Assembly: GCA_002269645.1 (NCBI GenBank)
Contig: NIVC01000910.1
Coordinates: 1-64,000 of the forward strand
DNA: 64,000 nucleotides
Source: Macrostomum lignano
Lineage: Eukaryota
Direction of reading: 5' to 3'
Positions 2,953 to 33,518 of the stretch are shown in pieces. The first letter of the stretch is position 1; each line of letters begins with the position of its first letter. The notes under the pieces are model-generated. The model made no database searches. It was not told the origin of the DNA and saw only the letters and a program-made list of their open reading frames with translations. Both the position numbers and the translations under genes were made by a program.

Positions 2953-3030
2953 GCGCGGGAAAGCTCGAATTGGCGCCGGAAGCTAAATTTGGCGCCAGGA
3001 TCCCCAAATTGGCGCCAGGATCGCCGAATC
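2953..3030 (+). repeat. Orphan 78-bp copy of the terminal unit of the 31.4-33.1 kb satellite
   Basis: Matches 33017-33094 in the same orientation, including the GATCGCCGAATC ending found only in the last satellite unit. Confidence 0.9.
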
Positions 3031-4842: not shown

Positions 4843-5355
4843 TGCTGCAAATGATTACAGAAATTCTATTATATAAAATTCTAATCCTTTCGAAATTTAT
4901 ATTTTTATATACTAAATATGGGAGAAATGGAAGAAGTGACAGATAGGGTGAATAGGGAAAAATGGGAGAGAAGTGACCTATAGGGTGAATAGGGAAAAGA
5001 AATGGGAGAGAAGTGAGAGCTGGGGTGCATTGGGAGATGGGAGAGAGATGATACACGATAGAGGAGGGAGTCAGTAGAAAGAAAGAGGAGACAGAGAAGA
5101 GAAGAGGGAGTTGGAGTCGTGTGAGTTCTAATACACAGGTATTTTCATGAGAAAACAAGACATTAAGAATATATGCACAATATAGGTAATGACTGTTGTA
5201 TTTTGTATATTTAAAAGTTTAGAATCCCGGGATCTGGGATCTGAAATCTGAGACTGGGATCTGAGATCTGAAATCTGGGATCTGAGATCTGATATATGAA
5301 ATCTGAGATCTGAAATCGGGGAGATCTGGGATTTAATTAACTAGCTATATACTAA

Positions 5356-5437
5356 CTGTGATTGTTAGCCAACCGTGTTTTTGTGAACAGGGTTGTTGCC
5401 TCTCCTGCACCACGCAGAGGTCATCACAACGCAGGAG
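5356..5437 (-). ncRNA. HDV-like self-cleaving ribozyme, copy C (diverged)
   Basis: RNA sense: P1 CUCCUGC/GCAGGAG; P2 UUGUGAU-G/C-A-AUCACAG; P3 ACC/GGU; L3 UCUGCGU; P1.1 partner AG; P4 CAACC/GGUUG; J4/2 GCUAA with the putative catalytic C at 5368. Confidence 0.8.
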
Positions 5438-5661
5438 TGGGGATCTGGATGTATGCAAAGTGACAATAATTACCCCAGCAAAGTATACAGAATTGATTTG
5501 CAAAGTGGGCAAAGTCACAGCAGTGAACCAGATCTTCTGCCACAGCATTTTCTGCAAAGCGGCCAGTCTTGCAAAGAGACTGAGGATTGCTTTACTGAGT
5601 ATAACATCAGTTAAGTTTAAAACAGACAGTTTTTTGGCTCTTAATTCGAATAGATGCATGC

Positions 5662-6961
5662 TTAACTATAGCGAAAAGCAGCCGAGCGGCCAAATAAACT
5701 GATAGTAGTCGGATTGGCTCTCGTCTCTATAGCTGAATGAGACATACCTGTTTGATTACTGTTAACACTTGAGACGCAGGCGTTAGTCAGTACAATAGCA
5801 GCTCCCTGCGGCTGCGCTTGCACTGTTGCACTGCTGTTTTCCATGTGAAAAAATTCTCGATAAGCACTGATTCCAGGTCCAAGCTCGTAGTTATCAAACT
5901 CATCAGGTTTGTCTGCCGGGATGTTCACTTCAGCACTCGTGGCTGGTGTTGCAGTAGCCGTGGCAGGTGTTGCAGTTGCAGCGGCCGTGGCAGGTGTAGC
6001 AGTTGCAGCGGCCGTGGCAGGTGTAGCAGTTGCAGCGGCCGTGGCAGGTGTAGCAGTTGCAGCGGCCGTGGCAGGTGTAGCGGCGCTCGAATGCCCTGCA
6101 CTTTCAATAAGATCAGAATGTTGGTAATTGACAAATACCAGATCCGTATTTTCCAACTTTTCAACCAACTGAACACATTCCGCCCTGTTTAAATGATGGG
6201 GTGACTTGAAATCGAGAGAAAATCTTCCGCGTGCAAATCTGGTTTTGTTTCGCTTGTCACTCTCCATTTGCTTCCATGGAATCGGGCCTCTGTTTCCAGC
6301 TCTCTTGAAAGCAGTCGTTGCTTTCTCCTGGATTGACAGTCTCAGCTTCTTCACATCACGAAAAGCGTTGGAAGGTCCGGTAGCTTCAGCTCGAACTGAT
6401 GCTTCTGTCGTAGCTTCCATTCGGGCTTGAGAGGCGATTTTTTCTTCTCGATAATATTCCTCTCCTTTCTTGATGATATCAGAAAGCTGTTTCACCGCTG
6501 CAGTTAATTCCTCTTGAACTCGGGAAGATACTCCATCAGATACGTAACATTCGGGCATATCTGTTGGTATGGATGGAGGAATAACGACGCAGAAAGATTT
6601 TTGAGCTCGTTTCAAGTCGACCAGAATGCTGCTTTTAAAATCTCTCGGACGATCTTTAGCCCTCTGCCTAAGAGCGTTTTTCTCGTCCTGCGTAAGAGCC
6701 TGGTATTCAGCCTTGAGGGCAGGTGTCCATTCTAAAAGTAATTGTGGAATGTATGGGATATACAGGAATCGTAGATTCAGATTCAGACGGACACACAGAG
6801 AGACAGACAGACGGACAGACAGACAGACGGACACTCTGACAGACAGACACTCTGACAGACAGACACTTTGACAGACAGACAGACAGACAGACAGAAAGAC
6901 GGACAGACACTCTGACAGACACAGACAGACAGACAGACGGACAGAAAAACAGACACACTCT

Positions 6962-7003
<42 letters not shown>

Positions 7004-7649
7004 AAGACAGAAATACAGACAGACAGAAAGACAGCCATACAGACAGACAGACAGAAAGACGGACAGACACTCTGACAGACAGACAGACAGACAGAAAAAC
7101 AGACACACTCTGACAGGCAGACAGACAGACAGACAGACAGAAAGACAGAAATACAGACAGACAGAAAGACAGACATACAGACAGACAGACAGACAGAAAG
7201 ACAGACGTACAAACAGACAGACAGACAGACAGACAGAAATACAGACAGACAGACATACAGACAGACAGACAGAAAGACAGACATACAAACTGGGTTTTTT
7301 TCGTCCATAACTTGGGTGCGATTTCGCACCCTGTGCTAGATTTCAGGGTGCGATTTTCAAGACCAGAATGCGCTGCACTGCTGCAGACAAAAACTTGCAA
7401 ATATTTGGGTGCGCTTTTTGCACCCTGAGTCAAATTTCAGGGTGCGATTTTTAAGACCAGGATGCTATTCGCACCCATTCGCACAAAAAAAACCCAGCAT
7501 ACAAACAGACAGACAGACAGAAAGACAGAAATACAGACAGACAGACAGACCTGAAATCTGGAATCTGAGATCTAAGATCTGAGATCTAGATAACGAAGAT
7601 ATATATAGACAGATATATATAGACAGACAGAGAGACGGACAGACACTCT

Positions 7650-7680
<31 letters not shown>

Positions 7681-7845
7681 GGACACCCTGACAGACAGAC
7701 AGACGCTGACAGACAGACAGAAAGACGGACAGACACTGACAGACAGACAGACAGACAGACACACTCTGACAGACATACAGACAGACAGACAGACACATAC
7801 AGACAGACAGACCATGACAGACAGACAGAAAGACGGACAGACACT

Positions 7846-7885
<40 letters not shown>

Positions 7886-7969
7886 CACTCTGACAGACAT
7901 ACAGACAGACAGACAGACACATACAGACAGACAGACCATGACAGACAGACAGAAAGACGGACAGACACT

Positions 7970-8011
<42 letters not shown>

Positions 8012-8287
8012 AAGACGGACAGACACTCTGACAGACAGACAGAAAAGCAGACACACTCTGACAGGCAGACAGACAGACAGACAGACAGAAAGACAGAAAT
8101 ACAGACAGACAGACAGACCTGAAATCTGGAATCTGAGATCTAAGATCTGAGATCTGGATAACGAAGATATATATAGACAGACAGAGAGACGGACAGACAC
8201 TCTGACAGACAGACAGACAGACAGACAGACGGACACCCTGACAGACAGACAGACGCTGACAGACAGACAGAAAGACGGACAGACACT

Positions 8288-8347
<60 letters not shown>

Positions 8348-8431
8348 CACTCTGACAGACATACAGACAGACAGACAGACACATACCGACAGACAGACCA
8401 TGACAGACAGACAGAAAGACGGACAGACACT

Positions 8432-8485
<54 letters not shown>

Positions 8486-8782
8486 AAGACGGACAGACAC
8501 TCTGACAGACAGACAGACACTCTGACAGACAGACAGACACATACAGACAGACAGACAGACGGACAGACAGGCAGTAAGACAGACATACAGACAGACAGAC
8601 AGACACTAAGACAGACAGACAGACAGACGGACAGACACTCTGACAGACGGACAGACAGACAAAAAGACAGACATACAGACACGACACAGGGATAACTAGA
8701 AATATTTGACCAGACTAAAAAATTTTTACTCACTTGCACCTCCGTGCTCGCTCAAAAACTGTGTGGCTGCCGTGTGAACCAT
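5662..8782 (-). CDS. HMG-box-like protein with Ala/Thr/Pro repeat (~372 aa; exons 8782-8734 and 6731-5662)
   Basis: GT-AG splice with matching phase 1 joins [43 protein letters not shown], which resembles HMG-box helices. An alternative donor at 5747 could splice in frame to the 4844 exon. Confidence 0.55.
5940..6085. repeat. 27-bp coding tandem repeat (ATPATAAAT)
   Basis: GCAGTTGCAGCGGCCGTGGCAGGTGTA units, about 4-5 copies. Confidence 0.9.
6785..8680. repeat. (GACA)n microsatellite-rich intron with an internal ~600-bp duplication
   Basis: Near-continuous GACA repeat; the block CCTGAAATCTGGAATCTGAGATCTAAGATCTGAG occurs at about 7550 and 8118. Confidence 0.95.
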
Positions 8783-9261
8783 ATCTGAGAGTAAAAGTTG
8801 TAGGGAATAATTTCTCTTACGACTGTGTAATAAACAACAACAGAAAAACTGTTTTGTTGAGCATGATTTCTACCCCTAGAATCCCTGTAATTATTTTTAT
8901 TACGCTGAATTGTAGTTCACTTAAAACATACACACAAACAACGCGTCAGTTTTAGTTTTTGGAATCATAGAGTTTTAATTAGACTTTGGAATATTTAATG
9001 ACTTAGATCATAGCGATTCAAACTAAGGCCCTCAATATAAAATCACTGAAATTTGCAGAATATGACAACGATCACTTAGCTAAGCTACTTAGTACTTTTT
9101 GTACTTTTTTGTCTTGATCGCCTGTCTGTCTTAAAATTGCCCAGCGATTAAAATTCGCTGGAGCTGGAGTGGCGACACTGCACCCGATTTAAAATTCAAA
9201 TCAATTACGCTTCTTTATTCTAGAAATTCAATTTCTTCCAAAGTCTCTAAAAGTCTCTTGA

Positions 9262-10335
9262 TCTTCTACTCTCCTCTCCCCTCTACTCTACTCTCCCCCC
9301 TCTACTCTACTTTCCTCTCCCCTTCCCCTCTACTCTACTCTCCTCTTCCCTCCCCCTCTACTCTACTCTTCTCTCTCCTCCTCCTCTACTCTCCTCTCCC
9401 CCCCTCTACTCTACTCTCTCCTCCTCCTCTACTCTCCTCTCCCCCCCTCTACTTTACTCTCCTCTACCCTCTACTCTACTCTCCCCTCCCCCTCTACTCT
9501 ACTGTCCTCTCCCCCCCTCTACTCGACTCTCCTCTCCCCTCCCCTTCTACTCGACTCTCCTCTCCCCTCCCCTCTACTCTACTCTCCTCTTCCCTCCCCC
9601 TCTACTCTACTCTTCTCTCCCCTCCTCCTCTACTCTACTCTCCTCTCCCCCCTCTACTTTACTCTCCTCTACCCTCTACTCTACTCTCCCCTCCCCCTCT
9701 ACTCTACTGTCCTCTCCCCCCTCTACTCGACTCTCCTCTCCCCTCCCCTTCTACTCGACTCTCCTCTTCCCTCCCCCTCTACTCTACTCTCCTCTTCCCT
9801 CCCCCTCTACTCTACTCTTCTCTCCCCTCCTCCTCTACTGTCCTCTCCTCTCCCCCCTCTACTTTACTCTCCTCTACCCTCTACTCTACTCTCCCCTCCC
9901 CCTCTACTCTACTGTCCTCTCCCCCCCTCTACTCGACTCTCCTCTCCCCTCCCCCTCTACTCTACTCTCCTCTTCCCTCCCCCTCTACTCTACTCTCCTC
10001 TTCCCTCCCCTTCTACTCTACTCTCCTCTTCCCTCCCCCTCTACTCTACTCTCCTCTTCCCTCCCCCTCTACTCTACTCTCTTCTCCCCCCTCTACTTTA
10101 CTCTCCTCTACCCTCTACTCTACTCTCCTCTCCCCTCTACTCTCTGCTCTCTCCTCTCCTCTCCATCTCTACTCTACGTTTCTACTCTCCTCTCTTCACC
10201 TCTCCTTCCCCCCTCTACTCCTCTACTCTATTCTCCTCTCCTCTCCTCAGCTCACCTCTCTACTCTCTCCACACTTCTCCTCTCTACTTTCCCCTCCTTA
10301 TCTTTCCTCTTCCTTCTCTCCTCTCTCCGTACTCT
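9262..10335. repeat. ~1.07-kb polypyrimidine (CTCTA/CTCCC) low-complexity tract
   Basis: Plus strand is almost entirely C/T with periodic A; explains ORF 9258-10355. Confidence 0.95.
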
Positions 10336-10599
10336 GGCCCGAAGTCATGCGCTAAGTTGTCAATCTAGCCCTTGACGGCTTGAAGTAAAAATTTTGCCGA
10401 CGTCTAAGTTAATGAACAAACAAACTGAAACAAGCAAGGATCTATAATGACACTTACCTTCTGCGTTGACTCGAAAATAGACGCCTAAGTAGAAAGTGTA
10501 GAAAAAGTGAGAGTTGAATTAGAAAATTAGAAAGAAGTAAGAAAATTATTTAGTAAGAGAGTGTAGGAAGGAAACTGAGTTTCAGTTGCAAGTGTTTAG

Positions 10600-11970
10600 A
10601 GTTTAGACTGGAGACTGCAGACTGTTTAGGGGGGGTGGTGCCCGGGGTGAGTTGGTTCTCTGGACTGCAGTGTGGCTAGGTCGGGACTGAGCCCCCCGGT
10701 CGTACCCGCCCTGCAGGAAAGAAAATGACCAATTCACAAAGGTGTACGGTAGACCCAGTAGCATGCCAGCCCTGAGGCTGAGCACCCGGGCTGCAGGTCG
10801 GCAAGCTGCCTGCTTTAGGGCTATGGTGCTCCTCCTTTCTGCCATTCTTTTTTTCTGGGCTGGCATCCCAGCGCTGTTTTATCCCTTTAGCTTTGTGCCT
10901 TTGTGGCTTTTATTATTTTAATCTTTTATCTGGCCACTAGAAGCCTTCCAATATTCGGAGTTATGAGCTCTGCCCTTGCCCGGTCCATCTTGCCCTGTCC
11001 TCGGGTCCATCTCCTGGCTCCTGCTGAAGGTCCCTGCTTGCGTGTCTCTGGCTCTCATCCTGACAGTGGATTGGTGTCCTGGGAAGGATGTTCGTCCCGA
11101 ACCGGGGACAACCGGCTGAGTCCGGAGTCCTCTTGCCCCGGGTGCCTCTTCTCCCGACCCCTTGGCCTGGCCCCCAATAATGAGCTGGATAGGCGATGCC
11201 CTTGGGTTGGTAGCAATAGAGGTGTATCCTAGTCCGCCTAGAGTCTCCCCCTCGGATACAAGCCTTCCAGACTCACTCCAAAATAGAGCTGGGTAGTGAA
11301 AAGCCTTGAGGCTCGAGCCCTACAGTTGTCCAGTGCTGTTTAGGATCGCTCTTGGTAATTAGCTGCCCAGACTCGCTCCAATAGTTTAAGCCATTTCCGT
11401 AGGTTTAGGAGTAACTCCTCACTCGGACCGCTTTTTTCAGTAATATTTCAAGCATTTCGCTTTCCAATTTTTCTGCGCACTCCCGAGGACTCGCTAGCTG
11501 GGGGGTGGCCTGGGTGGACTCGGTCCTAGCACCGTCCCTGATTCCACTGTTTGGGTTGGCGGTGTCTTGTACCGTAGGTTTGGGTCAACTCGCCCACCCG
11601 CGCTTTGAGCCGGGTCCAATCCCAATGCATTCCATGGGGTATCTCGGGCCCTGGACAGTTAATGCCTTGGCCCCTGGTAGTGCCCCTCAGCGGCAGAGCC
11701 CACCCAGGGCTGATCCGCGGGTAGCCAAGCTTCCCACCCCCGTTCAACAACAACAGACTGCAGAGTTAGAGTTCGACGAGCTTTCCAACCGGTTCAAATC
11801 GGTTTATACTGGACAGATTGCTTTGTCTGCTTTCTGGGAATTTTCCACTCCCCATTTTCCATTACTGTTGTTTACGGAAAGTGGGGGAAAGAAACTCCGT
11901 GCACTTAGAGGACAAGTGAGTTCGCATCTCCTCATCCAATGGCAGCTCGCTATTCTCTTCGGTGGCAGAG
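10600..11970. mobile_element. Possible degenerate element ending in CTCTTCGGTGGCAGAG-(GAATA)n
   Basis: GC-richer non-coding block sharing the same 16-nt end plus GAATA tail as the satellite units; no recognisable protein motif. Confidence 0.25.
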
Positions 11971-14900
11971 GAATAGAATAGAATAGAATAGAATAGAATA
12001 GAATAGAATAGAATAGAATAGAATAGAATACAATAGAATAGAATAGAATAGAATAGAATAGAATAGAATAGAATAGAATAGAATAGAATAGAATAGAATA
12101 GAATAGAATACAATAGAATAGAATAGAATAGAATAGAATAGAATAGAATAGAATAGAATAGAATAGAATAGAATAGAATAGAATAGAATAGAATAGAATA
12201 GAATAGAATAGAATAGAATAGAATAGAATAGAATAGAATAGAATAGAATAGAATAGAATACAATAGAATAGAATATTCTTGGATACTGCACTGTCTAAGA
12301 AGAATTATTTATTCTTTTTTCTCTTTAGACTGTTATTTTTGGCTGCTAAGAAATTATTTTACCTCGCGTACTTCAGCCGCACTACTAAGTAGTGCAAAAA
12401 GGATATGAAAGGTAGAATCGTGTTTTATGCGCATAGCGAATGACTTTGCGACTGTCAATACACATTACTGGACTGGTCACCAGAGGAAATGTGCTATAGC
12501 AAATTATCTATGCAACAAACATACTGCGCGAGAACACACTGCCCTTCCATGGGGGCGCTGTATTTGGGAGTGCTGTCTTTGGGTGGCGCTTGATCTCGCC
12601 ACACTGATTTTGGGCGAGATTCTTACCAGCCCTCTGAGATCCGCCCTCTCTCCCCGGATTCACCCAGCAGCGCAAGCCGGTGGTGGGCAGCAGGAGGCCA
12701 TCGGGCTGCAGAGGCCCCAAACCGGAGCCCCACAGAAGCTGCTGCTCTTCGGTGGCAGAGGAATAGAATAGAATAGAATAGAATAGAATAGAATAGAATA
12801 GAATAGAATAGAATAGAATAGAATAGAATAGAATAGAATAGAATAGAATAGAATAGAATAGAATAGAATATAATAGAATAGAATACAATAGAATAGAATA
12901 TTCTTGGATACTGCACTGTCTAAGAAGAATTATTTATTCTTTTTTCTCTTTAGACTGTTATTTTTGGCTGCTAAGAAATTATTTTACCTCGCGTACTTCA
13001 GCCGCACTACTAAGTAGTGCAAAAAGGATATGAAAGGTAGAATCGTGTTTTATGCGCATAGCGAATGACTTTGCGACTGTCAATACACATTACTGGACTG
13101 GTCACCAGAGGAAATGTGCTATAGCAAATTATCTATGCAACAAACATACTGCGCGAGAACACACTGCCCTTCCATGGGGGCGCTGTATTTGGGAGTGCTG
13201 TCTTTGGGTGGCGCTTGATCTCGCCACACTGATTTTGGGCGAGATTCTTACCAGCCCTCTGAGATCCGCCCTCTCTCCCCGGATTCACCCAGCAGCGCAA
13301 GCCGGTGGTGGGCAGCAGGAGGCCATCGGGCTGCAGAGGCCCCAAACCGGAGCCCCACAGAAGCTGCTGCTCTTCGGTGGCAGAGGAATAGAATAGAATA
13401 GAATAGAATAGAATAGAATAGAATAGAATAGAATAGAATAGAATAGAATAGAATAGAATAGAATAGAATAGAATAGAATAGAATACAATAGAATAGAATA
13501 TTCTTGGATACTGCACTGTCTAAGAAGAATTATTTATTCTTTTTTCTCTTTAGACTGTTATTTTTGGCTGCTAAGAAATTATTTTACCTCGCGTACTTCA
13601 GCCGCACTACTAAGTAGTGCAAAAAGGATATGAAAGGTAGAATCGTGTTTTATGCGCATAGCGAATGACTTTGCGACTGTCAATACACATTACTGGACTG
13701 GTCACCAGAGGAAATGTGCTATAGCAAATTATCTATGCAACAAACATACTGCGCGAGAACACACTGCCCTTCCATGGGGGCGCTGTATTTGGGAGTGCTG
13801 TCTTTGGGTGGCGCTTGATCTCGCCACACTGATTTTGGGCGAGATTCTTACCAGCCCTCTGAGATCCGCCCTCTCTCCCCGGACTCACCCAGCAGCGCAA
13901 GCCGGTGGTGGGCAGCAGGAGGCCATCGGGCTGCAGAGGCCCCAAACCGGAGCCCCACAGAAGCTGCTGCTCTTCGGTGGCAGAGGAATAGAATAGAATA
14001 GAATAGAATAGAATAGAATAGAATAGAATAGAATAGAATAGAATAGAATAGAATAGAATAGAATAGAATACAATAGAATAGAATATTCTTGGATACTGCA
14101 CTGTCTAAGAAGAATTATTTATTCTTTTTTCTCTTTAGACTGTTATTTTTGGCTGCTAAGAAATTATTTTACCTCGCGTACTTCAGCCGCACTACTAAGT
14201 AGTGCAAAAAGGATATGAAAGGTAGAATCGTGTTTTATGCGCATAGCGAATGACTTTGCGACTGTCAATACACATTACTGGACTGGTCACCAGAGGAAAT
14301 GTGCTATAGCAAATTATCTATGCAACAAACATACTGCGCGAGAACACACTGCCCTTCCATGGGGGCGCTGTATTTGGGAGTGCTGTCTTTGGGTGGCGCT
14401 TGATCTCGCCACACTGATTTTGGGCGAGATTCTTACCAGCCCTCTGAGATCCGCCCTCTCTCCCCGGATTCACCCAGCAGCGCAAGCCGGTGGTGGGCAG
14501 CAGGAGGCCATCGGGCTGCAGAGGCCCCAAACCGGAGCCCCACAGAAGCTGCTGCTCTTCGGTGGCAGAGGAATAGAATAGAATAGAATAGAATAGAATA
14601 GAATAGAATAGAATAGAATAGAATAGAATAGAATAGAATAGAATAGAATAGAATAGAATACAATAGAATAGAATATTCTTGGATACTGCACTGTCTAAGA
14701 AGAATTATTTATTCTTTTTTCTCTTTAGACTGTTATTTTTGGCTGCTAAGAAATTATTTTACCTCGCGTACTTCAGCCGCACTACTAAGTAGTGCAAAAA
14801 GGATATGAAAGGTAGAATCGTGTTTTATGCGCATAGCGAATGACTTTGCGACTGTCAATACACATTACTGGACTGGTCACCAGAGGAAATGTGCTATAGC

Positions 14901-17900
14901 AAATTATCTATGCAACAAACATACTGCGCGAGAACACACTGCCCTTCCATGGGGGCGCTGTATTTGGGAGTGCTGTCTTTGGGTGGCGCTTGATCTCGCC
15001 ACACTGATTTTGGGCGAGATTCTTACCAGCCCTCTGAGATCCGCCCTCTCTCCCCGGACTCACCCAGCAGCGCAAGCCGGTGGTGGGCAGCAGGAGGCCA
15101 TCGGGCTGCAGAGGCCCCAAACCGGAGCCCCACAGAAGCTGCTGCTCTTCGGTGGCAGAGGAATAGAATAGAATAGAATAGAATAGAATAGAATAGAATA
15201 GAATAGAATAGAATAGAATAGAATAGAATAGAATAGAATAGAATAGAATAGAATAGAATAGAATAGAATATAATAGAATAGAATACAATAGAATAGAATA
15301 TTCTTGGATACTGCACTGTCTAAGAAGAATTATTTATTCTTTTTTCTCTTTAGACTGTTATTTTTGGCTGCTAAGAAATTATTTTACCTCGCGTACTTCA
15401 GCCGCACTACTAAGTAGTGCAAAAAGGATATGAAAGGTAGAATCGTGTTTTATGCGCATAGCGAATGACTTTGCGACTGTCAATACACATTACTGGACTG
15501 GTCACCAGAGGAAATGTGCTATAGCAAATTATCTATGCAACAAACATACTGCGCGAGAACACACTGCCCTTCCATGGGGGCGCTGTATTTGGGAGTGCTG
15601 TCTTTGGGTGGCGCTTGATCTCGCCACACTGATTTTGGGCGAGATTCTTACCAGCCCTCTGAGATCCGCCCTCTCTCCCCGGATTCACCCAGCAGCGCAA
15701 GCCGGTGGTGGGCAGCAGGAGGCCATCGGGCTGCAGAGGCCCCAAACCGGAGCCCCACAGAAGCTGCTGCTCTTCGGTGGCAGAGGAATAGAATAGAATA
15801 GAATAGAATAGAATAGAATAGAATAGAATAGAATAGAATAGAATAGAATAGAATAGAATAGAATAGAATAGAATAGAATAGAATAGAATAGAATACAATA
15901 GAATAGAATATTCTTGGATACTGCACTGTCTAAGAAGAATTATTTATTCTTTTTTCTCTTTAGACTGTTATTTTTGGCTGCTAAGAAATTATTTTACCTC
16001 GCGTACTTCAGCCGCACTACTAAGTAGTGCAAAAAGGATATGAAAGGTAGAATCGTGTTTTATGCGCATAGCGAATGACTTTGCGACTGTCAATACACAT
16101 TACTGGACTGGTCACCAGAGGAAATGTGCTATAGCAAATTATCTATGCAACAAACATACTGCGCGAGAACACACTGCCCTTCCATGGGGGCGCTGTATTT
16201 GGGAGTGCTGTCTTTGGGTGGCGCTTGATCTCGCCACACTGATTTTGGGCGAGATTCTTACCAGCCCTCTGAGATCCGCCCTCTCTCCCCGGATTCACCC
16301 AGCAGCGCAAGCCGGTGGTGGGCAGCAGGAGGCCATCGGGCTGCAGAGGCCCCAAACCGGAGCCCCACAGAAGCTGCTGCTCTTCGGTGGCAGAGGAATA
16401 GAATAGAATAGAATAGAATAGAATAGAATAGAATAGAATAGAATAGAATAGAATAGAATAGAATAGAATAGAATAGAATAGAATAGAATAGAATAGAATA
16501 GAATACAATAGAATAGAATATTCTTGGATACTGCACTGTCTAAGAAGAATTATTTATTCTTTTTTCTCTTTAGACTGTTATTTTTGGCTGCTAAGAAATT
16601 ATTTTACCTCGCGTACTTCAGCCGCACTACTAAGTAGTGCAAAAAGGATATGAAAGGTAGAATCGTGTTTTATGCGCATAGCGAATGACTTTGCGACTGT
16701 CAATACACATTACTGGACTGGTCACCAGAGGAAATGTGCTATAGCAAATTATCTATGCAACAAACATACTGCGCGAGAACACACTGCCCTTCCATGGGGG
16801 CGCTGTATTTGGGAGTGCTGTCTTTGGGTGGCGCTTGATCTCGCCACACTGATTTTGGGCGAGATTCTTACCAGCCCTCTGAGATCCGCCCTCTCTCCCC
16901 GGATTCACCCAGCAGCGCAAGCCGGTGGTGGGCAGCAGGAGGCCATCGGGCTGCAGAGGCCCCAAACCGGAGCCCCACAGAAGCTGCTGCTCTTCGGTGG
17001 CAGAGGAATAGAATAGAATAGAATAGAATAGAATAGAATAGAATAGAATAGAATAGAATAGAATAGAATAGAATAGAATAGAATAGAATAGAATACAATA
17101 GAATAGAATATTCTTGGATACTGCACTGTCTAAGAAGAATTATTTATTCTTTTTTCTCTTTAGACTGTTATTTTTGGCTGCTAAGAAATTATTTTACCTC
17201 GCGTACTTCAGCCGCACTACTAAGTAGTGCAAAAAGGATATGAAAGGTAGAATCGTGTTTTATGCGCATAGCGAATGACTTTGCGACTGTCAATACACAT
17301 TACTGGACTGGTCACCAGAGGAAATGTGCTATAGCAAATTATCTATGCAACAAACATACTGCGCGAGAACACACTGCCCTTCCATGGGGGCGCTGTATTT
17401 GGGAGTGCTGTCTTTGGGTGGCGCTTGATCTCGCCACACTGATTTTGGGCGAGATTCTTACCAGCCCTCTGAGATCCGCCCTCTCTCCCCGGACTCACCC
17501 AGCAGCGCAAGCCGGTGGTGGGCAGCAGGAGGCCATCGGGCTGCAGAGGCCCCAAACCGGAGCCCCACAGAAGCTGCTGCTCTTCGGTGGCAGAGGAATA
17601 GAATAGAATAGAATAGAATAGAATAGAATAGAATAGAATAGAATAGAATAGAATAGAATAGAATAGAATACAATAGAATAGAATATTCTTGGATACTGCA
17701 CTGTCTAAGAAGAATTATTTATTCTTTTTTCTCTTTAGACTGTTATTTTTGGCTGCTAAGAAATTATTTTACCTCGCGTACTTCAGCCGCACTACTAAGT
17801 AGTGCAAAAAGGATATGAAAGGTAGAATCGTGTTTTATGCGCATAGCGAATGACTTTGCGACTGTCAATACACATTACTGGACTGGTCACCAGAGGAAAT

Positions 17901-18018
17901 GTGCTATAGCAAATTATCTATGCAACAAACATACTGCGCGAGAACACACTGCCCTTCCATGGGGGCGCTGTATTTGGGAGTGCTGTCTTTGGGTGGCGCT
18001 TGATCTCGCCACACTGAT
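11955..18018 (+). repeat. Macrosatellite: 10 units of a ~485-bp core separated by variable (GAATA)n (period 575-625 bp; last unit truncated)
   Basis: Identical ORFs recur at 12427, 13052, 13652, 14237, 14827, 15452, 16062, 16672, 17262 and 17837. The first GAATA tract spans 11971-12275. Confidence 0.98.
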
Positions 18019-18312
18019 CCATTGGCACTGGAGTTATCGCAGCTATTCTTAACAAAATAACTCAGGTTGAAAGAGATCTTGCAGAGTGGATCGCGAATAA
18101 TATATATTTGCTACTTTTCCTCTGCAGTGCTTGAGGCTCTAGCTTAATCAGCTTTCCAGATATTCAATGGCGGAGATTCCGAAAAATTCTAATGTATTCA
18201 AATGGGGGAATTCGGGAAAATCAATCAGGAATTGCCAAGCTGTAGTAATAAACTCAGATTTGAGATTCTACAGATCATTAGAGCGTGCCAGTCGGTGTCT
18301 TCCGCAGAATGA

Positions 18313-18556
18313 AGGTTCTTGGGTCAGGATAGGAGATTCTTGGGTGAGGCTATTCTTGGGTCAGCATGGAAGATTATTGGGTCAGGATAGGAGATTCTTG
18401 GGTGAGGCTATTCTTGGGTCAGCATGGAAGATTATTGGGTCAGGATAGGAGATTCTTGGGTGAGGCTATTCTTGGGTCAGCATGGAAGATTCTTGGGTCA
18501 GGATAGGAGATTCTTGGGTGAGGCTATTCTTGGGTCAGCATGGAAGATTCTTGGGT
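18313..18556 (+). repeat. ~57-bp minisatellite (about 4 copies) built on TTCTTGGGT subunits
   Basis: TTCTTGGGTCAGGATAGGAGATTCTTGGGTGAGGCTATTCTTGGGTCAGCATGGAAGA repeated. Confidence 0.9.
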
Positions 18557-19487
18557 ACTGACACTTCGATGACATGTTTTATCAGTTTGAAGAATACCTT
18601 GCACGGCTTTAGACTCAGTTTTCGAGCTGGTATCTAAGCACAGTCTCATTCAAGCTGTAGTTAAGCCAGTATTATCTTCACTTCAGCAGCGCATACAACT
18701 TATCCGATTTCAGTGGCGTCCTGGTTCATTTTGCCCCTACTGAGCGGTGGAATCTCCATTGCCCTGTTCTACTTTATCCAGGTCTTCATCCTTATACTAA
18801 GGTGATTATGTAAAGCTTTAAAAATGTTTACTTTTAATTTGTGATTGTGTGCACAAGCGCGCACTAGCAGAGGCGCACACTGGCAGAGGCGCGCACCGGC
18901 ACAAGAGCGCAGCAGCACAAGAGCGCACTGGCAGAGGCGCGCACTTTTGACACGCTGTAGCATAAGCGCGCTGTCTGTCTGTCTGTCTGTCAGACGGCAT
19001 GTCTGAGAGAAACCCTACAAACTGAAACACACAGGGAAGGCAGAAACAAGTATTTGCAGAATGCGAGTAAAAACAGACGCCAGCCTATAAATTGGTCCAT
19101 AAAATATTTCTTTATATTGTTTGTCACAGATAAGACGCCCAAGCTAATTACAAAAAAACAGCCGCAAAAAAGATTAAGCTGAAAATTGTCTGCCCAACCA
19201 AATTTAAAAACTGTTAAAAGACCAACAATTAAAGTAATAAAGTTGAAGAGAAAAAATACAATAGTAGGCACTATCTACTGCTATAGGTAAAATTAAACGA
19301 GGCACTGATAAGAAAACGATAAAAAATATTTTACGAGCGTACTACCAAAGCGAGAGAAAAGTGAGGGATGGAAAAATAACAGATAAAATTGAAAAAGTCC
19401 ATAAACAGACCGACACCGCAGATAATAGTTAAACAGCTACAACTAGCTACTTAAGGACAGTAGTGCAAGCGCATGCTAGTGCAGTTT

Positions 19488-20981
19488 TTAAATAATCGAC
19501 GAATTCAGCCGGAAATTCGGCTCCGAGTTCAGCTGCTGGTAACCAGACAGTGTGGCGTCGAATTCGCCCTCGTAATCTTCGTCATCGTTATCCACTTTGA
19601 CATCAAGATCGAGGTCGTCCTCGGATTTCGGATCGGCGGAGGCCTGCAGGTTAGGGGTGGCGACCGAGTTTTTGAAAGGCCATTTGAGGACAGGGAGATG
19701 ATGATAAATGAGGTCATTCAAGGATGAGGAAATATATGCCATGAAAGGTCGATATTTAGGGACACGGACAGGGGTCATGTAGGACAAGACAAGGGGTTAT
19801 TTAGGGACATGAGTATTGGTCATTTAAGGTCACAAACATCATGACGGTATCACATGTTTAGTTGCACGCATATAAAGTGGTGAGTCATACATTAACATGG
19901 GTTGATAAAATTTCCCAGCTCACCGATCGATTATAGCCTAGCCGGGAGTCGGTCTCGCCGTCTCGACTATCGTCGTTGCCCCCAGCCAGCGATGCGGCTA
20001 AACAAGCGGCCACATCGAAGGCGGTTGTAGCGGCAGCAGCGTTAGCAGCAGTCCTACTACCCATAGTATTGCTGCCTAACACAGCAGCGCCGGTAGTATT
20101 CGCCAGTGGCAAATAAATTTTTCTAGCCACCACCGTCTGCTTCTGCTGCTGCTGCTGGCTGTCAGAGCCGGTCGCTCCCGATGCCGGGTATCGCCGACGG
20201 CCGGAACGGGCGCGCAGCTGCGGCTCCCCTGCACTCAGGCGTCTCTGCGCGAGAGATAAGAATAGGAAAGGGGTCAAATGAGGACAATAATTCTAAGCAG
20301 AGGTCATTTCAGGACAAAAATCAACCCTGGGGTCAGTTGAGGACAAAAGTCTACCCAGGGGTCATTTGAGGACAGAATCTATCTGGAGGTCATTTGAGGA
20401 CAAACTAATATACGTAAAGATCATTTGAGGGCAAACATCTACCGTGGGGTCATTGAAGACAGAGGTTATTTGGGGCAAAAAAAGTGCGCAGGGGTCAACT
20501 GTCCTTACCTGGCCAACAGTTGTGACGGCGGCGGCGGAGGCGGCGCACCACCCCGTCGGAACAAGGCGGCAGCGTCAGCGCCTTTGACAGTCGCCGATTG
20601 GCCCGCCTGGGTCGGCCGCCGAGATCGCCAAGACTGGGCGACATGGACGACGCCTGCTCCGTCGAAGACTGCTGCGGCAGAGTTGTTGTTAAAGAGTCGG
20701 TGGCCATCGACGCGGCAGCGGCGACGGCGGCTGCGGCCGTGGCGTCGAGTAGAGGCTGGTCCAAGACAACGGCTGCCGACAGCTGCTGGCGAGAGCAGAC
20801 GGCTCGACTCGAAGGCTCTGCTGGCAGGCGCGGCAACAGCGGCGCCGAATGATGAAGCGCAGTTTAGCCGAACGATCGCGCTCCGCAAGGACCTGCAATT
20901 GCAGCTGCATGCGAAGATTGGTCAGGTCCATCTGGAGGTCGTCCACACGATGCAGGCGTTTCTCGTAGTGCTGCCGAATCT
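19488..20981 (-). CDS. 3' exons of a DLK/LZK (MAP3K12/13)-like kinase gene; kinase domain not in the window
   Basis: The exon starting at 20981 (CCCCAG acceptor) encodes IRQHYEKRLHRVDDLQMDLTNLRMQLQL, matching the DLK second leucine zipper [28 protein letters not shown]. Further exons lie near 20244 and 19650-19488 (acidic tail). At least one frameshift is needed. Confidence 0.55.
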
Positions 20982-21334
20982 CTGGGGCGAAAGAAATGAC
21001 AAGAGACTGTTAGGCGGCAAACAAGGACACAGGACTTCTAGAGGTTAAAGGACACAAAAGGTCTCTTAGAGGTCGAATGAGAACACAGAACTATAAGGGT
21101 AAAATGAGGACACAGGACTGTTAGGGGTCAAATGAGGACACGGGACTGTTGAGGGTCAATTGAGGACACGGAGCTGTTATGGGTCAAACTAGGACACGCG
21201 GGGACTGTTGTTGTGATAAGTTTTTGCATCATGTAGCAAACAGACCATGGCACATTTGCACTAATGCACCATATCTAGACCAGCAGTATCTGAAATAGAA
21301 GCAAAAGCCATTTATAAGATAATATACATGTAGG

Positions 21335-21626
21335 TCAGTGAAGCAAATATCTAAAATTGTTAACAGAAGTATAAAAGAAAAATGAACAAGAAAAAATGGT
21401 GCTCAGTTAGCCGATTCTAAAAGTGAATCGTGGATCCCCTGAGCCACGAAGAGGCCGAACACCGTTCAGGGGGTTAATCCATAGTTCACTTTGCAGAGCA
21501 AAACAAATTCCACAGCACAGTAAACAGTGCACAGCGGTCTTTTGCAGCATTGAACTAAGGATCAATCCCGCCACTAAGAGCGGGAAGCCACAGCAAGAAA
21601 TGCAAAGCGGCCAGCTTTTTGAAAGC
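21335..21626 (+). repeat. 292-bp direct repeat, copy A (partner 25313-25604)
   Basis: Appears identical by eye; offset 3978 bp. Confidence 0.97.
21398..21472 (-). ncRNA. HDV-like self-cleaving ribozyme, copy A
   Basis: RNA sense: P1 CCCCUGA/UCAGGGG; P2 GGUGUUC-G/C-U-GAGCACC; P3 GCC/GGC; L3 UCUUCGU; P4 CGAUUC/GAAUCG; J4/2 GCUAA with the putative catalytic C at 21410. Confidence 0.82.
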
Positions 21627-21694
21627 CGATAAAATCTTATAGCGAACTCCCCATGCAACGGGGGCTGATGGTTTCAGAGAATAAACTTAGCCTT

Positions 21695-23733
21695 TCAGTC
21701 TTTAAGCCACGGATGCAGTCGAAGCACATCCGAGCGCCTTTCTCCATAATCGTAGAGTAGCTCCTCGCCTCGAGCAATGTCTCGAATGGCTTGGAAGACC
21801 AGATGCGGTTTATTGTTTACATCAGCAACAATCGGCTTCAAGTTATTTCTTCGCCGGCTATGGTTAATGTACCGACCGACGTACTGGAAAGTGTTGGTTG
21901 CGTCGATGCAATAAGCTTGATCTCGCCAGGAAAAGAAAAACAAGAAGCAGCATGGCTTCCCTTGCTTTACAATATCTTCCTCCCGGGCGAGGCGTGCTTT
22001 TTGTCCTTGGATTAATTCTCCACCGTAAGTACAGACGACAGTGCCTTTTGGGAGGTCCGTACGGGCAAATGCCCCCAGACCCTCTGCGTCGACGCTACCG
22101 GCCTGAACCACGACGTTGCCGGTAGAAATCATTGTCTGTCGAACCACATCGGCCATAGTGAGTTGCCTCATAGACGCCATTTCGGTCGGCAGGGATCGCT
22201 CTGGACTCCCACGGCTAGCTCGGCCGTGAGGCGTCACGTGAAGGAGCGGCGTGCATGCTCCGTCCGGAGTTGTGATAGTGTCCGGGACTAGACGCTCGCG
22301 ATTAGCTGCCATTGCAGGAGGGGCAACCGCAGCAGCGTGGCTATTTGAGTCCTCAGGCGAAGTCACAGTCGGCTCGAAAGGCGGATCATTGGACAGGCCA
22401 TCTTTATTGGCTTCTCCTCTTTGGAGCCGAACGCTAAGGGGAACCTGACAGTGAAGAAAATGAAGAGGACAAATGATTCATAGTGGTAACGGCATACAAA
22501 TGCAGATTAACCCCAACGCTTTAATCTTTGCATTGAATAAACATGCAACAAAATTGTTCCTAAGAACACTGTTTCACACAATAAACTGTGGACTTCATTT
22601 AGTTTGACCAACTTACTTCATTGGAGGTCGCCGGTACAGCGTCGGTAGATAAGGCGACGTCTATAGTTGCAGCAGCGGCAGACTCCGGGACCAGAAGCTC
22701 GCGATTAGCTGCCATTGCAGGAGGGGCAACCGCAGCAGCGTGGCTATTTGAGTCCTCAGGCGAAGTCACAGTCGGCTCGAAAGGCGGATCATTGGACAGG
22801 CCATCTTTATTGGCTTCTCCTCTTTGGAGCCGAACGCTAAGGGGAACCTGACAGTGAAGAAAAAAGTACATCATAATGGTTACAACATGCAATTAAAGAT
22901 GAACGTAACCCTTTGTTATTTTCATTAAACATACATGCAACCCAGCTGATGGTAAGATAATTGCTCTACACCATAAACCATGGGCCAGCATAAAAGACCC
23001 CACCCCTTGTTGTTAATCCCTAATATTTCCTTTTGAGCAAAGTATCTAAAAGCTTTTATTTATTCATTTTTCACTTTCATCTTCTCAAATTTACCAAACA
23101 TTCAACTTTTTAAGAAAAGTTGCGACCTGACCTGACCCGCGACCTGATGCTTTCAAGGTTACAGGCCGCAGCGTTTTAACAACAAAAAACCATGGACACA
23201 AATTTTAGTTTAACACACCTCATTGGAGGTCGCCATTTCAGCGTCGGTAGCTAAGTCCGCGTCCATTGTTATAGCGGCGGCAGATTCCGGCAGGCTTTCA
23301 AGCGGCAAGGCTGGATTAAGATTTAGTTGAGGCCGGATGCCGTAAAAGGCCAACAACCGCAGGCCCTCAATTCTGTCATATGCCCTTGCCCTCGCATCAG
23401 CTACGGCTGCACGGCCGACAACAAATGCTTCGCCGAAATGGCACAGCCGCATGTGTTGTCTCATATTAGAGGCGGCAAATGAGCTGCACAGCTGGCAAAG
23501 CTTTAAATCTCTTTTGCCATGCCAACGTTTGTAGAGAATGTAGGCTTCGACTCGATCGTAGTTTGCTGTATGCTTGCTTCGAGCGTGTCGAAGGAGGGTG
23601 GCGGACCGATTGGTGGAATAGTCACACATCGGGCAAATAAACTGGTCAGGGTCCATATTGAATTGATTCAAGTTTTCAACGTAAACGTTTAGAGTAAAAT
23701 TTAGTTCTCGATAAAACGTGTCGCGCAAACTTT
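21695..23733 (-). CDS. KMT5A-like: Double C2H2 zinc finger plus PR-Set7/SETD8-type SET histone methyltransferase (exons 23733-23219, 22847-22617, 22444-21695)
   Basis: SET motifs GLGAFA, YCIDAT, GRYINHS, RDIARGEELLYDYG and the C-terminal HPWLK typical of SETD8. Fingers CPMC..H..H and CQLC..H..H. Canonical GT-AG phase-0 joins. Confidence 0.85.
22251..22856 (-). repeat. Internal tandem duplication of a ~160-bp exon start plus acceptor
   Basis: VPLSVRLQRGEANKDG...AMAANRE is encoded twice (from 22847 and from 22444). Confidence 0.9.
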
Positions 23734-24018
23734 CTGAAAATGAGGAAAAATCAAAATGAAACCTTTAACTACGGTGAAAGATGAATGAACTAGGCATCTT
23801 GGTAATAGGTACTTTACAATGCACTCTTAAAGACTGTCAGACTGAAAGCAAAGAAGGCATGTTCCGCTCGCTCGTAGTCTCAGGACAATAATAAAAGGCA
23901 GCTGAACAGATCAAATCAAATGTTTATTTGAAAGGTTGGGCGATACAACGGACTTGATAACGCATTACAGTCCCGAATTTCTGCATAGTAGCATTAGGTT
24001 GCCAGTCACACTGAAGTT

Positions 24019-24607
24019 TTAAAGCAAATCGAGTAGTGAAACGGAATTCGAAATTGTAGGATTTGCATTTTGTTGCAACGAAACGCTGGGAGAAGCTGGA
24101 TTAAAAAAGCCATTGAAATCATTGTCTAACGTAGTTACACTACAACTGTGGCAGGGGCATGTACAATGGCTATCAGGGCAATTGAAAATGTTTGAACGTA
24201 AAACACTTGGACCGGAGAGCTGTGAATCGGCACACTTTTCGGAGGGGTTCCTGGCGGCTAGTGATTGCAGCTTAGAAATTAAAACTTCAGCGTTTTCTTT
24301 AGCCTCGTCTAAGTTATAGGTAGATTGCGAATTTCCATGTCTTAGATTGCTTTCCATGTTTTACCCTAACATGGCTTGGTAAATTCGAAGTGATAACACT
24401 GCAAACAGGACACTGATAGAGGTAACCCGATTCGGTTCGCTTCTTTGCCTTTAAAAGTCCAAAAAGGCGGATTGTGGCATCAATTTGCTCTTCAGTGGCA
24501 TCAGGGTGCTTTCGATTGCAATGTACCTTGAAACCAGATGCGCGTCCTGTCCAAGCATTGCAGATCAAACAGGAAATCTGCGTATGAACCTGCACCATGT
24601 GAGACAT
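24019..24607 (-). CDS. Double C2H2 zinc-finger ORF with a frameshift near 24340
   Basis: CLIC...HCNRKH and CPVC..SNLPSHVRVKH; an imperfect 19-nt duplication (ACATGGAAAGCAATCTAAG) shifts the frame into HGNSQSTYNLDEAKEN; same finger spacing as the SET gene. Confidence 0.6.
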
Positions 24608-25312
24608 TGTCCCGCGGGTGACATTCAAGAGCTGCGGGAAAACGTTGTGGGCTTATTATTATACTGCTTCCAGGGAGGTTAGGCAAATTAAGTCTTAATT
24701 TTTGTATTCTAAGACAATGACGGAGAGGAAATGCTTTAGAGTATAAAAAATTCTGAATCTCACATCTGAATCTCCTATCCTCTGATCGGAACCAGGTCTA
24801 TCTTCCAACATGAACATCCTTTCCTCTCAACTGAAACCCTCGAGTCCGAGTCAATAAGGCTACAGGCCAAGCAGGGTGCCATTAGTTAGTGTGGGCAGTT
24901 ACATTTTCAATCTCCCCAGCCAAGCCTAAAGTGCTGCTATAAATGGGATAATGAGTGCATGGCGGGATGGGTCACTGCTATTGCTTATGGTTAACACGTA
25001 ACAAAAGTAAAAGACAAAAATGTGTATATCACGATTACTAGTTCCACTTTTATTATACTTTCGCGCTATCTTTGAAGCAGTATGCAAATATACTATTGGC
25101 ATAGCGGGCGTCTAAACGCAGGCTAACATAAGAGAACTGACAAATTGCAGTGAGTGTCAAAGTGTAGTACAACGAAAAGGGACAAAAGTAAGACGCATAT
25201 GCGCCTCTCGCTGCAACGACAGGCGACTGCATATAAATGCATGAAATATTAAGTAATACAAACGAGAGAATAAAACACATTCAAGAAAGTTGCTCGTAGT
25301 TATAAATTTCAA

Positions 25313-25604
25313 TCAGTGAAGCAAATATCTAAAATTGTTAACAGAAGTATAAAAGAAAAATGAACAAGAAAAAATGGTGCTCAGTTAGCCGATTCTAAAA
25401 GTGAATCGTGGATCCCCTGAGCCACGAAGAGGCCGAACACCGTTCAGGGGGTTAATCCATAGTTCACTTTGCAGAGCAAAACAAATTCCACAGCACAGTA
25501 AACAGTGCACAGCGGTCTTTTGCAGCATTGAACTAAGGATCAATCCCGCCACTAAGAGCGGGAAGCCACAGCAAGAAATGCAAAGCGGCCAGCTTTTTGA
25601 AAGC
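25313..25604 (+). repeat. 292-bp direct repeat, copy B
   Basis: Matches 21335-21626. Confidence 0.97.
25376..25450 (-). ncRNA. HDV-like self-cleaving ribozyme, copy B (identical to A)
   Basis: Same sequence and fold as 21398-21472; begins 260 nt after the transposase stop codon. Confidence 0.82.
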
Positions 25605-25709
25605 TGAAATACTGCTTACTTTGGTAGGCTGTAAACTTTACAGTAAATTTCTAAGAGAAATCGGTATACGTTTATAAACTGGTTTAGAATTTCATGTAAA
25701 CAAGCTAGT

Positions 25710-33094: not shown

Positions 33095-33518
33095 AGCGCT
33101 GGAATTTGCCAACGGGCGTAGAAGTGGCAGCATATATCAGCTTGCTACTTTTTGGCGCCGATTTTAATATACCGGCGCCAATTTCAGCCTTTGGGCGCCC
33201 ATTTTAGCGCCCTGGCAAGGTCAATGCATTTAGTTCTCACGCGATGGCGCCAAAAAATTTTTTTTTCTTTTTTTGAATTAGTGCCATGTATCTTGCCAAC
33301 CAATACGAGTCAAGTTCTGGCGTCTGCTTTTCCACAGCCGCCTGGCTGGGTCCCGTCAACAAGCTATTTTTAGCGTGGGAAACTGTCTGACTCACTCATT
33401 TGATTCCCCGAGTCCACGGGTGCAAGGGCTAGCCAAGGTGGACCCACGGTGGAGCCACCTGGCTAGCCACGTATTTTTTGTGTAGTGGATTGTCTGGCTA
33501 GCCTGGGAATATGCTCTG

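Follow-up and report, generated by a model that had tools for sequence, protein, structure and literature searches.

Background

To our knowledge, the known eukaryotic ribozymes of the type found in hepatitis delta virus (HDV) lie mostly at the 5' ends of retrotransposon RNAs or within introns, and a biological role has been established for very few of them. Here we describe three predicted HDV-like ribozymes from the flatworm Macrostomum lignano, which are placed behind open reading frames (ORFs) in a region that carries a KDZ (Kyakuja-Dileera-Zisupton) DNA transposase gene, each directly preceded by a conserved folded RNA domain. The region belongs to contig NIVC01000910.1 of GenBank assembly GCA_002269645.1; the stretch analysed, positions 1 to 64,000 of the forward strand (64,000 nucleotides, nt), is referred to as the window, and all coordinates are window positions. 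The features that concern the ribozymes are as follows:

5356..5437, minus strand: HDV-like ribozyme copy C, 82 nt (RF02682 match, pairing, descriptor)
21398..21472, minus strand: HDV-like ribozyme copy A, 75 nt (RF02682 match, pairing)
25376..25450, minus strand: HDV-like ribozyme copy B, identical to A (RF02682 match, repeat, descriptor)
5438/5437 (C), 21473/21472 (A) and 25451/25450 (B), minus strand: predicted cut sites
5368 (C), 21410 (A) and 25388 (B): predicted catalytic cytosine

The closest described family, and the best match in Rfam, comprises the RF02682/drz-Fpra-1-type ribozymes from gut bacteria and phages, including the theta ribozymes. A pattern search derived from copy C identified 13 phage contigs in IMG/VR (L002-L014) that share its core, CCUCUNCGUGG-N8-AGGCAAC...GGCUAA. 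The phage examples have in common with copy C the ACC-UCUNCGU-GGU segment, a P1 helix of 7 base pairs (bp), the AG of P1.1 followed by GCAAC, and GGCUAA. They differ from the flatworm ribozymes in that the latter have a J4/2 segment two nt longer, occur in an animal host and follow protein-coding genes, while copies A and B lack AGGCAAC. Position 1 also sets the two apart: it is a G, paired to C37, in all 13 phage examples and a C, paired to G, in the flatworm copies. The P1 of the phage contigs is nearly always GCUGCUC/GAGCAGC.

Two other described systems are relevant for comparison. L1TcRz from Trypanosoma cruzi is an active HDV-like ribozyme whose product starts from C1, and it has been proposed to release RNAs from polycistronic transcripts (PMC3185411); it makes up the first 77 nt of its element and stays attached to the useful RNA downstream, whereas the conserved sequence of the flatworm is found before the cut, with no retroelement behind it. 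The 5' ribozymes of R2, RTE and other retrotransposons without long terminal repeats (non-LTR) exhibit the same fold, are likewise used by mobile elements and cleave the co-transcript (PMC3774820), but in these elements the conservation starts at the cut, while the flatworm copies are found 3' of genes and in the region of a DNA (KDZ) transposon. A full-text search of an incomplete literature library retrieved no paper that links HDV-like ribozymes with DNA transposons, KDZ, Macrostomum or the 3' ends of genes, in agreement with the initial annotation of this locus, which knew of no such ribozyme described at gene 3' ends in a DNA transposon.

Identification of the ribozyme fold

The whole window was scanned against Rfam at the gathering threshold, which yielded no match, and positions 5000-26000 were scanned at permissive E-values. 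The latter scan reported three minus-strand matches to RF02682 (HDV-F-prausnitzii), each end to end (model positions 1-74 of 74), at 5356-5437, 21399-21472 and 25377-25450, with 37.9 bits for copy C (E-value 6.4e-4) and 21 bits for both A and B (E-value 5.2 in the 21 kb searched); within its own 295-nt module copy A was matched with an E-value of 0.073. The scan with HDV-like models proposed in the initial annotation thus recovers all three sites at full length, though below the curated RF02682 cut-off of 44 bits. No further HDV-type Rfam match was found in 26000-64000. The RF02682 model covers only P1, P3 and P4 and has no terms for P2 or P1.1, therefore the helices of the pseudoknot were checked directly. 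The corresponding segments of the two sequence versions (C, and the identical A and B, hereafter A/B) are:

P1: CUCCUGC/GCAGGAG, 7 bp (C); CCCCUGA/UCAGGGG, 7 bp (A/B)
P2: UUGUGAU/AUCACAG, 7 bp (C); GGUGUUC/GAGCACC, 7 bp (A/B)
P3: ACC/GGU, 3 bp (C); GCC/GGC, 3 bp (A/B)
L3: UCUGCGU (C); UCUUCGU (A/B); RF02682 consensus UCUaCGU
P1.1: C21-G38 and U22-A37, 2 bp (C); U23-A38, 1 bp, with C22 facing U39 (A/B)
J1/4: AGGCAA, or AGGCAAC with the next nt (C); AUCCA (A/B)
P4: 5+4 bp (C); 6(+1) bp (A/B)
J4/2: GCUAAC (C and A/B)

The base-by-base check revealed a complete nested double pseudoknot at all three sites, in the order P1-P2-P3-L3-P3'-P1'-J1/4-P4-J4/2-P2', with no mismatch in the P1, P2, P3 and P4 helices of C or A/B. 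The three minus-strand copies with full HDV topology that had been proposed for these coordinates are therefore borne out both by the pairing and by the full-length RF02682 matches. L3 conforms to UCUNCGU in C and A/B and possesses the conserved U...CG(N) positions (for the reverse wobble U-G pair and the P1.1 pyrimidines); the role of the L3 G has been described (PMC3774820). The putative catalytic C follows P4 directly, in a C-N-R-A context, at the positions to which it had been assigned before in copies C and A (5368 and 21410), and the surrounding GGCUAAC, which C and A/B share, corresponds in the alignment to GGCUAA of the RF02682 model.

The initial annotation had pointed out two irregularities, a C at position +1 and a P1.1 of only 1-2 bp. 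Both are present: P1.1, the mini-helix that L3 forms with the two nt behind P1', has 2 bp in C and 1 bp in A/B, and in all copies the +1 nucleotide is a C paired to G instead of the usual G (in a G-U wobble or G-C pair) at the base of P1. The C at +1 is however a weaker objection than it seemed, because L1TcRz is active in vitro with a product that begins with C1, and has G37 in a G-C-rich P1 (PMC3185411); a G at +1 is hence usual but not obligatory.

To estimate the chance expectation, we used a structure-only descriptor (P1 of 7 bp, P2 of at least 6, P3 of 3, L3 of 7-8 nt, P4 of at least 4, and C-N-R-A), which matched the three sites and one other in the window, compared with about 1.1 matches per dinucleotide-shuffled window; the topology alone is therefore weak evidence. 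A match at 30970..30844 was rejected as no more than chance would give. With a generic L3 (U[CU]NNCGN) added, the descriptor matched exactly the three sites in the real sequence and produced 2 matches in 1000 dinucleotide shuffles, a figure that is somewhat favourable, as the spacer ranges were fixed after the candidates were known. Descriptor matches at 31657-32942 (minus strand), which appear when P2 is relaxed to 5 bp, are artefacts of a 20-nt minisatellite containing GGCGCC.

Compensatory changes between the two versions

Copies A and B are parts of one 295-nt direct repeat (21335-21629 and 25313-25607) with 99.7% identity, therefore the locus provides only two independent versions of the ribozyme, A/B and C. 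Thus, of the three copies reported initially, all are present, but they amount to two independent ones. The identity between C and A/B in the ribozyme is only ~58%, and yet the pairing is maintained. In P1, 7 of 7 pairs are kept, two of them with both partners changed (U-A to C-G and C-G to A-U); in P3 the pairs are likewise kept, with one double change (A-U to G-C). In the structure-based register not one position of P2 is identical, but all 7 of its 7 pairs are formed in either version, and the P4 sequences are unrelated but form a hairpin in both. L3 and J4/2, on the other hand, are identical at 6 of 7 and 5 of 5 positions, respectively. These results agree with the previously noted swaps in P1 and P3, the rewritten but still paired P2 and P4, and the UCUnCGU (L3) and GCUAAC (J4/2) segments common to C and A/B.

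This retention of pairing and core at ~58% identity indicates that both the fold and the catalytic core are under selection. It is chiefly for this reason that we accept the assignment despite the sub-threshold Rfam scores: judged from sequence and pairing, the three sites are real members of the HDV-like ribozyme fold and this fold is well conserved.

A conserved folded domain precedes each ribozyme

The similarity between C and A/B is not confined to the ribozyme. It begins ~145-157 nt before the cut, where the A/B repeat starts, and extends to the 3' end of the ribozyme; the two versions are 63% identical over the upstream domain and 58% over the ribozyme, as compared with 41% before and 48% after the module. 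This conserved upstream domain was missing from the initial annotation. Its positions, and those of the adjoining parts of the repeat, are:

5438..5582, minus strand: folded domain before copy C (alignment, minimum free energy, consensus fold)
21473..21629, minus strand: folded domain before copy A (alignment, minimum free energy, consensus fold), with an extra 21-nt hairpin relative to C
25451..25607, minus strand: folded domain before copy B, same sequence as A (repeat, alignment, motif)
5539-5566 (C), 21587-21614 (A) and 25565-25592 (B), minus strand: invariant motif
21335..21397, minus strand: T-rich tail of the A/B repeat, copy A, with a T6 run directly after the ribozyme; not conserved in C
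25313..25375, minus strand: T-rich tail of the A/B repeat, copy B (295-nt repeat), with T6 directly after the ribozyme

The domain of copy A has a minimum free energy of -57 kcal/mol (z=-5.9; none of 200 shuffled sequences folds as well), and that of copy C -38.8 kcal/mol (z=-2.5). The consensus fold (RNAalifold on MAFFT columns) contains 27 pairs: 19 are the same in the two versions, 2 differ on one side only, 5 are compensatory, with both sides changed, and 1 is gapped. The long closing stem of the domain stops 1 nt (A/B) or 4 nt (C) short of the predicted cut, and folding of the whole module keeps the domain separate from the ribozyme helices P1, P3 and P4. The most conserved part is a motif of 23 fixed bases, CTGGCCGCTTTGCA-N5-TGCTGTGGC (hairpin parts GGCCGCUUUGCA-N5-UGCUGUGGC), in which the 5-nt loop is the sole variable part. 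In the window the motif is found at the three sites only, with 0 occurrences expected by chance. No match to it was found in metagenome contigs of the Joint Genome Institute (JGI), no Rfam family matched the domain (permissive scan of 5000-26000 and of the 295-nt module), and one other M. lignano locus, around a Gypsy copy, contains no cassette.

The predicted unit is accordingly a portable cassette of ~220-295 nt, which consists of a folded domain (~135-157 nt) with the HDV-like ribozyme directly after it. The A and B cassettes are nearly identical although they stand behind unrelated genes, therefore the cassette moves as a unit.

The cassette fold may, alternatively, be a relic or catalytically dead, and the cassette kept for other reasons, either because the hairpin motif serves as a protein-binding or DNA-level signal of the transposon, or simply as young repeated DNA. 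We regard this as quite unlikely. It would account for the Rfam scores below threshold, the absence of G at +1, the 1-bp P1.1 of A/B together with a J1/4 that departs from the consensus, and the lack of any variation in the 23 bases of the motif. Nonetheless, the 17 pairs of P1, P2 and P3 are kept at 58% identity by means of multiple double substitutions, with the catalytic J4/2 unchanged and L3 nearly so, which is hard to explain without selection on the fold.

The boundaries of the cassette also bear on the possibility that a non-LTR retrotransposon or short interspersed element (SINE) has inserted at each site, with the ribozyme as its 5' end and its position near the gene ends as an accident. 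This is the known context of HDV-like ribozymes in animals (PMC3185411, PMC3774820), but the homology between the copies begins ~150 nt upstream of the cut and not at the cut, no reverse transcriptase (RT) or endonuclease ORF lies downstream, and visual inspection revealed neither a tail nor a target-site duplication (TSD) at the ends of the repeats. We consider this explanation highly improbable.

We also considered that the domain is a shared coding exon, since both versions contain a WPLCxxCCG reading frame and YAG is found at the 5' edge of the module in B and C. In A/B this frame is open for 73 codons and ends at a TAA inside the GGCUAAC of the ribozyme. The possibility was set aside as unlikely, because the frame of C stops after 21 codons, A has GG in place of AG, and the 23 bases show no synonymous variation. 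Regions 21473-21629 and 5438-5582 are thus more likely non-coding, with conservation predicted at the level of RNA or DNA, and a short shared C-terminal exon is retained as a weak alternative. A transcription unit of RNA polymerase III (Pol III) was likewise set aside, because the T6 run after A/B is not conserved in C.

Position of the cassettes relative to genes

Each of the three cassettes lies on the same strand as the long ORF that precedes it, and no cassette was found behind any other ORF of the window. The ORFs and genes concerned are:

25710..28554, minus strand: KDZ transposase gene, before cassette B, in frames 28554..28078 (B-box-like zinc finger), 27894..27039 and 26878..25710
21695..22366, minus strand: SET-domain ORF, before cassette A (PF00856, E-value 3.3e-20, residues 96-208 of 223)
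23210-23728, minus strand: C2H2 zinc-finger ORF (Pfam)
5662..6558, minus strand: orphan ORF before cassette C, at least 298 codons (ORF listing)

The stop codons are followed by the cassette after 102 nt (transposase, B), 65 nt (SET, A) and ~79 nt (orphan ORF, C), and by the predicted cut after 259, 222 and 224 nt, respectively. The claim that the cuts lie 220-260 nt after the stops with no AATAAA in between therefore holds; ATTAAA is absent from these intervals as well, at all three sites. As to the identity of the genes, which had been given as an HMG-like, a SET and a transposase gene, the SET domain (PF00856) and the KDZ transposase (PF18758) were confirmed by the Pfam search, but the HMG-like assignment was not, the corresponding ORF having no significant match other than low-complexity ones in Pfam, the PDB or representative proteins.

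The KDZ domain (PF18758) was identified in ORFs 26899-27894 and 25710-26975 (minus strand; E-values 1.1e-18 and 6.8e-8, profile positions 4-125 and 125-212), accompanied by a weak match to CxC1. Between the two halves lies a GT-AG intron of 160 nt (27038..26879, minus strand; donor G|GTGAGT, acceptor ATCAG|G), across which they connect in frame, and the KDZ domain looks uninterrupted over the junction, therefore the KDZ transposase gene is an ordinary spliced eukaryotic gene. A word-indexed protein search with the KDZ ORF returned no match. The SET ORF has only distant relatives in protein searches (~35-39% identity), and the few named ones are bacterial or metagenomic; together with the C2H2 ORF it may form one gene. 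Between these two ORFs there is a direct repeat of ~300 nt with 84% identity (22281-22586 and 22684-22978), which overlaps the start of the SET ORF, and a weaker repeat is found at 22578-22688 and 23182-23290. The ORFs of the window are absent from exact-match protein collections.

The orphan ORF before cassette C contains no HMG or other Pfam domain at E-values up to 10, has no significant relative among PDB sequences (best E-value 0.1), and gave only low-complexity matches against 1.84 billion representative proteins. Its length of at least 298 codons and its end within 80 nt of the cassette are nevertheless suggestive of a gene.

Polyadenylation signals are present after the ribozymes, at very different distances: ATTAAA at +18 in C, only TATAAA at +81 in A, and AATAAA at +321 in B. 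Their presence is in favour of a function as a damper of expression within the 3' untranslated region (UTR). In this case poly(A) addition would take place beyond the ribozyme, and self-cleavage would strip the tail and destabilise the message, which would keep the expression of the transposase and cargo low; a cut that is partial and tunable would be in keeping with the weak P1.1 and the C at +1. Rodent Clec2 hammerhead ribozymes in 3' UTRs, upstream of the normal poly(A) site, have reportedly been proposed to lower expression in this manner. They are likewise placed between the stop codon and the end of the message, but they belong to another ribozyme class and are not known to have a conserved terminal domain. 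We nonetheless find a damper unlikely, since it leaves unexplained the conserved ~150-nt folded domain with compensatory changes that ends at the cut, and since a canonical signal is absent from the first 80 nt after A and the first 320 nt after B.

The arrangement of ORFs and ribozymes, all on one strand and in series, together with the placement of A and B as 295-nt direct repeats 3978 nt apart around coding sequence, invites another explanation, namely that cleavage divides a long transposon transcript in the service of the downstream RNA. It could generate the 5' ends of the next cistron, as happens in non-LTR retrotransposons, or excise a 3978-nt RNA between cuts B and A. Such an RNA, containing the zinc-finger and SET ORFs and having a 5'-OH and a cyclic phosphate at its ends, could be ligated to a circle as in retrozymes. 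M. lignano possesses spliced-leader (SL) trans-splicing and operons (PMC8629364), which is also compatible with this idea. However, the identity of C and A/B drops to 48% after the ribozyme while the conserved part is upstream of the cut, no ATG or ORF follows closely behind the ribozymes, and by visual inspection no primer-binding site (PBS), polypurine tract (PPT) or TSD flanks the repeats. We therefore judge processing for a downstream RNA decidedly improbable.

The resemblance of A/B to retrozymes and Penelope-like elements is limited to the ~300-nt direct repeats with a self-cleaving ribozyme around an internal segment. Those elements use the hammerhead class, and in the flatworm the interior is 3.7 kb long, protein-coding and devoid of PBS, PPT, TSD and reverse transcriptase, and a third, diverged cassette stands alone. 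An LTR- or retrozyme-like interpretation of A/B was accordingly rejected, as neither PBS, PPT nor TSD was discernible by eye. Neither the ORFs of the window nor Pfam revealed an RT or endonuclease ORF downstream of any of the ribozymes.

The ends of the element were sought with a coarse inverted-repeat scan (minimum arm length 40 nt, exact seed of 14 nt), which returned only microsatellite artefacts among the 25 longest matches; short terminal inverted repeats (TIRs) are beyond its detection. A 78-nt direct repeat, 100% identical and in the same orientation (2953-3030 and 33017-33094), brackets ~30 kb with all three cassettes. Upstream of the KDZ gene, positions 31393-33095 are occupied by the 20-nt minisatellite mentioned above, AAGCTCAAATTGGCGCCGGA (GGCGCC palindrome; higher-order periods of 139-457 nt), and 33017-33094 are its last 78 nt. 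The minisatellite and the 78-nt repeats could mark the ends of the element, or an insertion into the array.

Proposed function in the formation of mRNA 3' ends

Conservation covers the domain and the ribozyme but no sequence behind them, therefore the RNA under selection would be the upstream one, i.e. the message of the gene. In our opinion, nothing argues more strongly than this upstream domain for the upstream RNA as the relevant product. We give a chance close to even to the proposal that the cassette is a portable 3'-end-processing module, placed behind genes of RNA polymerase II in the region of a KDZ transposon, at least one of which contains an intron. As the nascent transcript emerges, the ribozyme would fold and cut at its own 5' edge, so that the mRNA before it would be set free and end in a 2',3'-cyclic phosphate, while the ribozyme itself would remain on the discarded downstream RNA. 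The new 3' end would abut the domain's closing stem, which stops 1-4 nt from the terminus, and the domain with its invariant hairpin could act as a non-poly(A) 3' end that shields the RNA or binds a protein.

More tentatively, and with a probability that we put well short of even, we speculate that this is a ribozyme-made, poly(A)-independent mRNA 3' end of a DNA transposon, in which the domain would take the place of the poly(A) tail as regards stability, export or translation, possibly with the help of a hairpin-binding protein. At the 3' end of MALAT1 and MEN-beta, a triple-helix element is followed by a tRNA-like structure that is cut by RNase P. These RNAs offer a functional analogy only, in that a structured element 5' of a non-canonical cut provides a stable non-polyadenylated end; the cut is made by RNase P, there is no similarity of sequence or fold, and the U-rich/A-rich signature of the triple helix was not found in the flatworm domain.

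Several observations weigh against a function in 3'-end formation. There are only two independent versions, from a single locus, and every RF02682 score is lower than the curated cut-off of 44 bits. All copies have the +1 C-G pair at a place that is G1-C37 in each of the 13 phage relatives sharing the core of copy C. In A/B, P1.1 consists of one A-U pair next to a C/U mismatch and the GCAA of J1/4 is missing, hence the A/B ribozymes may be slow or dead. The ATTAAA 18 nt past ribozyme C fits polyadenylation beyond the ribozyme, and the orphan ORF 5662..6558, having no homologues, may not be a gene.

The cassette architecture and its genomic setting are both new. If the proposal of ribozyme-made 3' ends is true, it would add a new role of ribozymes (the making of mRNA 3' ends) and, in the cut-and-paste DNA transposon, a host element of a new class, and these would be the first natural protein-coding animal messages with 3' ends made by self-cleaving ribozymes. 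For expression constructs, the cassette could supply a small natural module of the "terminator plus 3' cap" kind. Transgenic M. lignano can be produced, which allows a direct test.

Other features of the window

Between cassette A and the orphan ORF the window contains a satellite (11961-17885) of ~10 units of 575-625 nt, 86-100% identical, the small ORFs of which have no Pfam match. Simple repeats around cassette C (5230-5330, 4254-4850 and 6700-8700), of the types (CAGATCT/CAGATTT)n and (CTGT)n, give rise to long spurious ORFs, and a 27-nt minisatellite is located among the repeats of this kind at 5969-6127. A Gypsy-type LTR retrotransposon occupies 34318-41721 on the minus strand and encodes gag, protease/RT/RNase H and integrase; its pol is 96% identical to M. 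lignano BOX15_Mlig030307g2. The ORF at 61932-63437 (plus strand) combines a type-B DNA polymerase of the viral/organellar kind (PF03175) with endonuclease VII (PF02945) and may be part of a Maverick/Polinton-like or another polB element. Upstream of it, the N-terminus of the ORF at 58346-59566 is rich in cysteine and, on visual inspection, similar to the B-box-like ORF of the KDZ gene.

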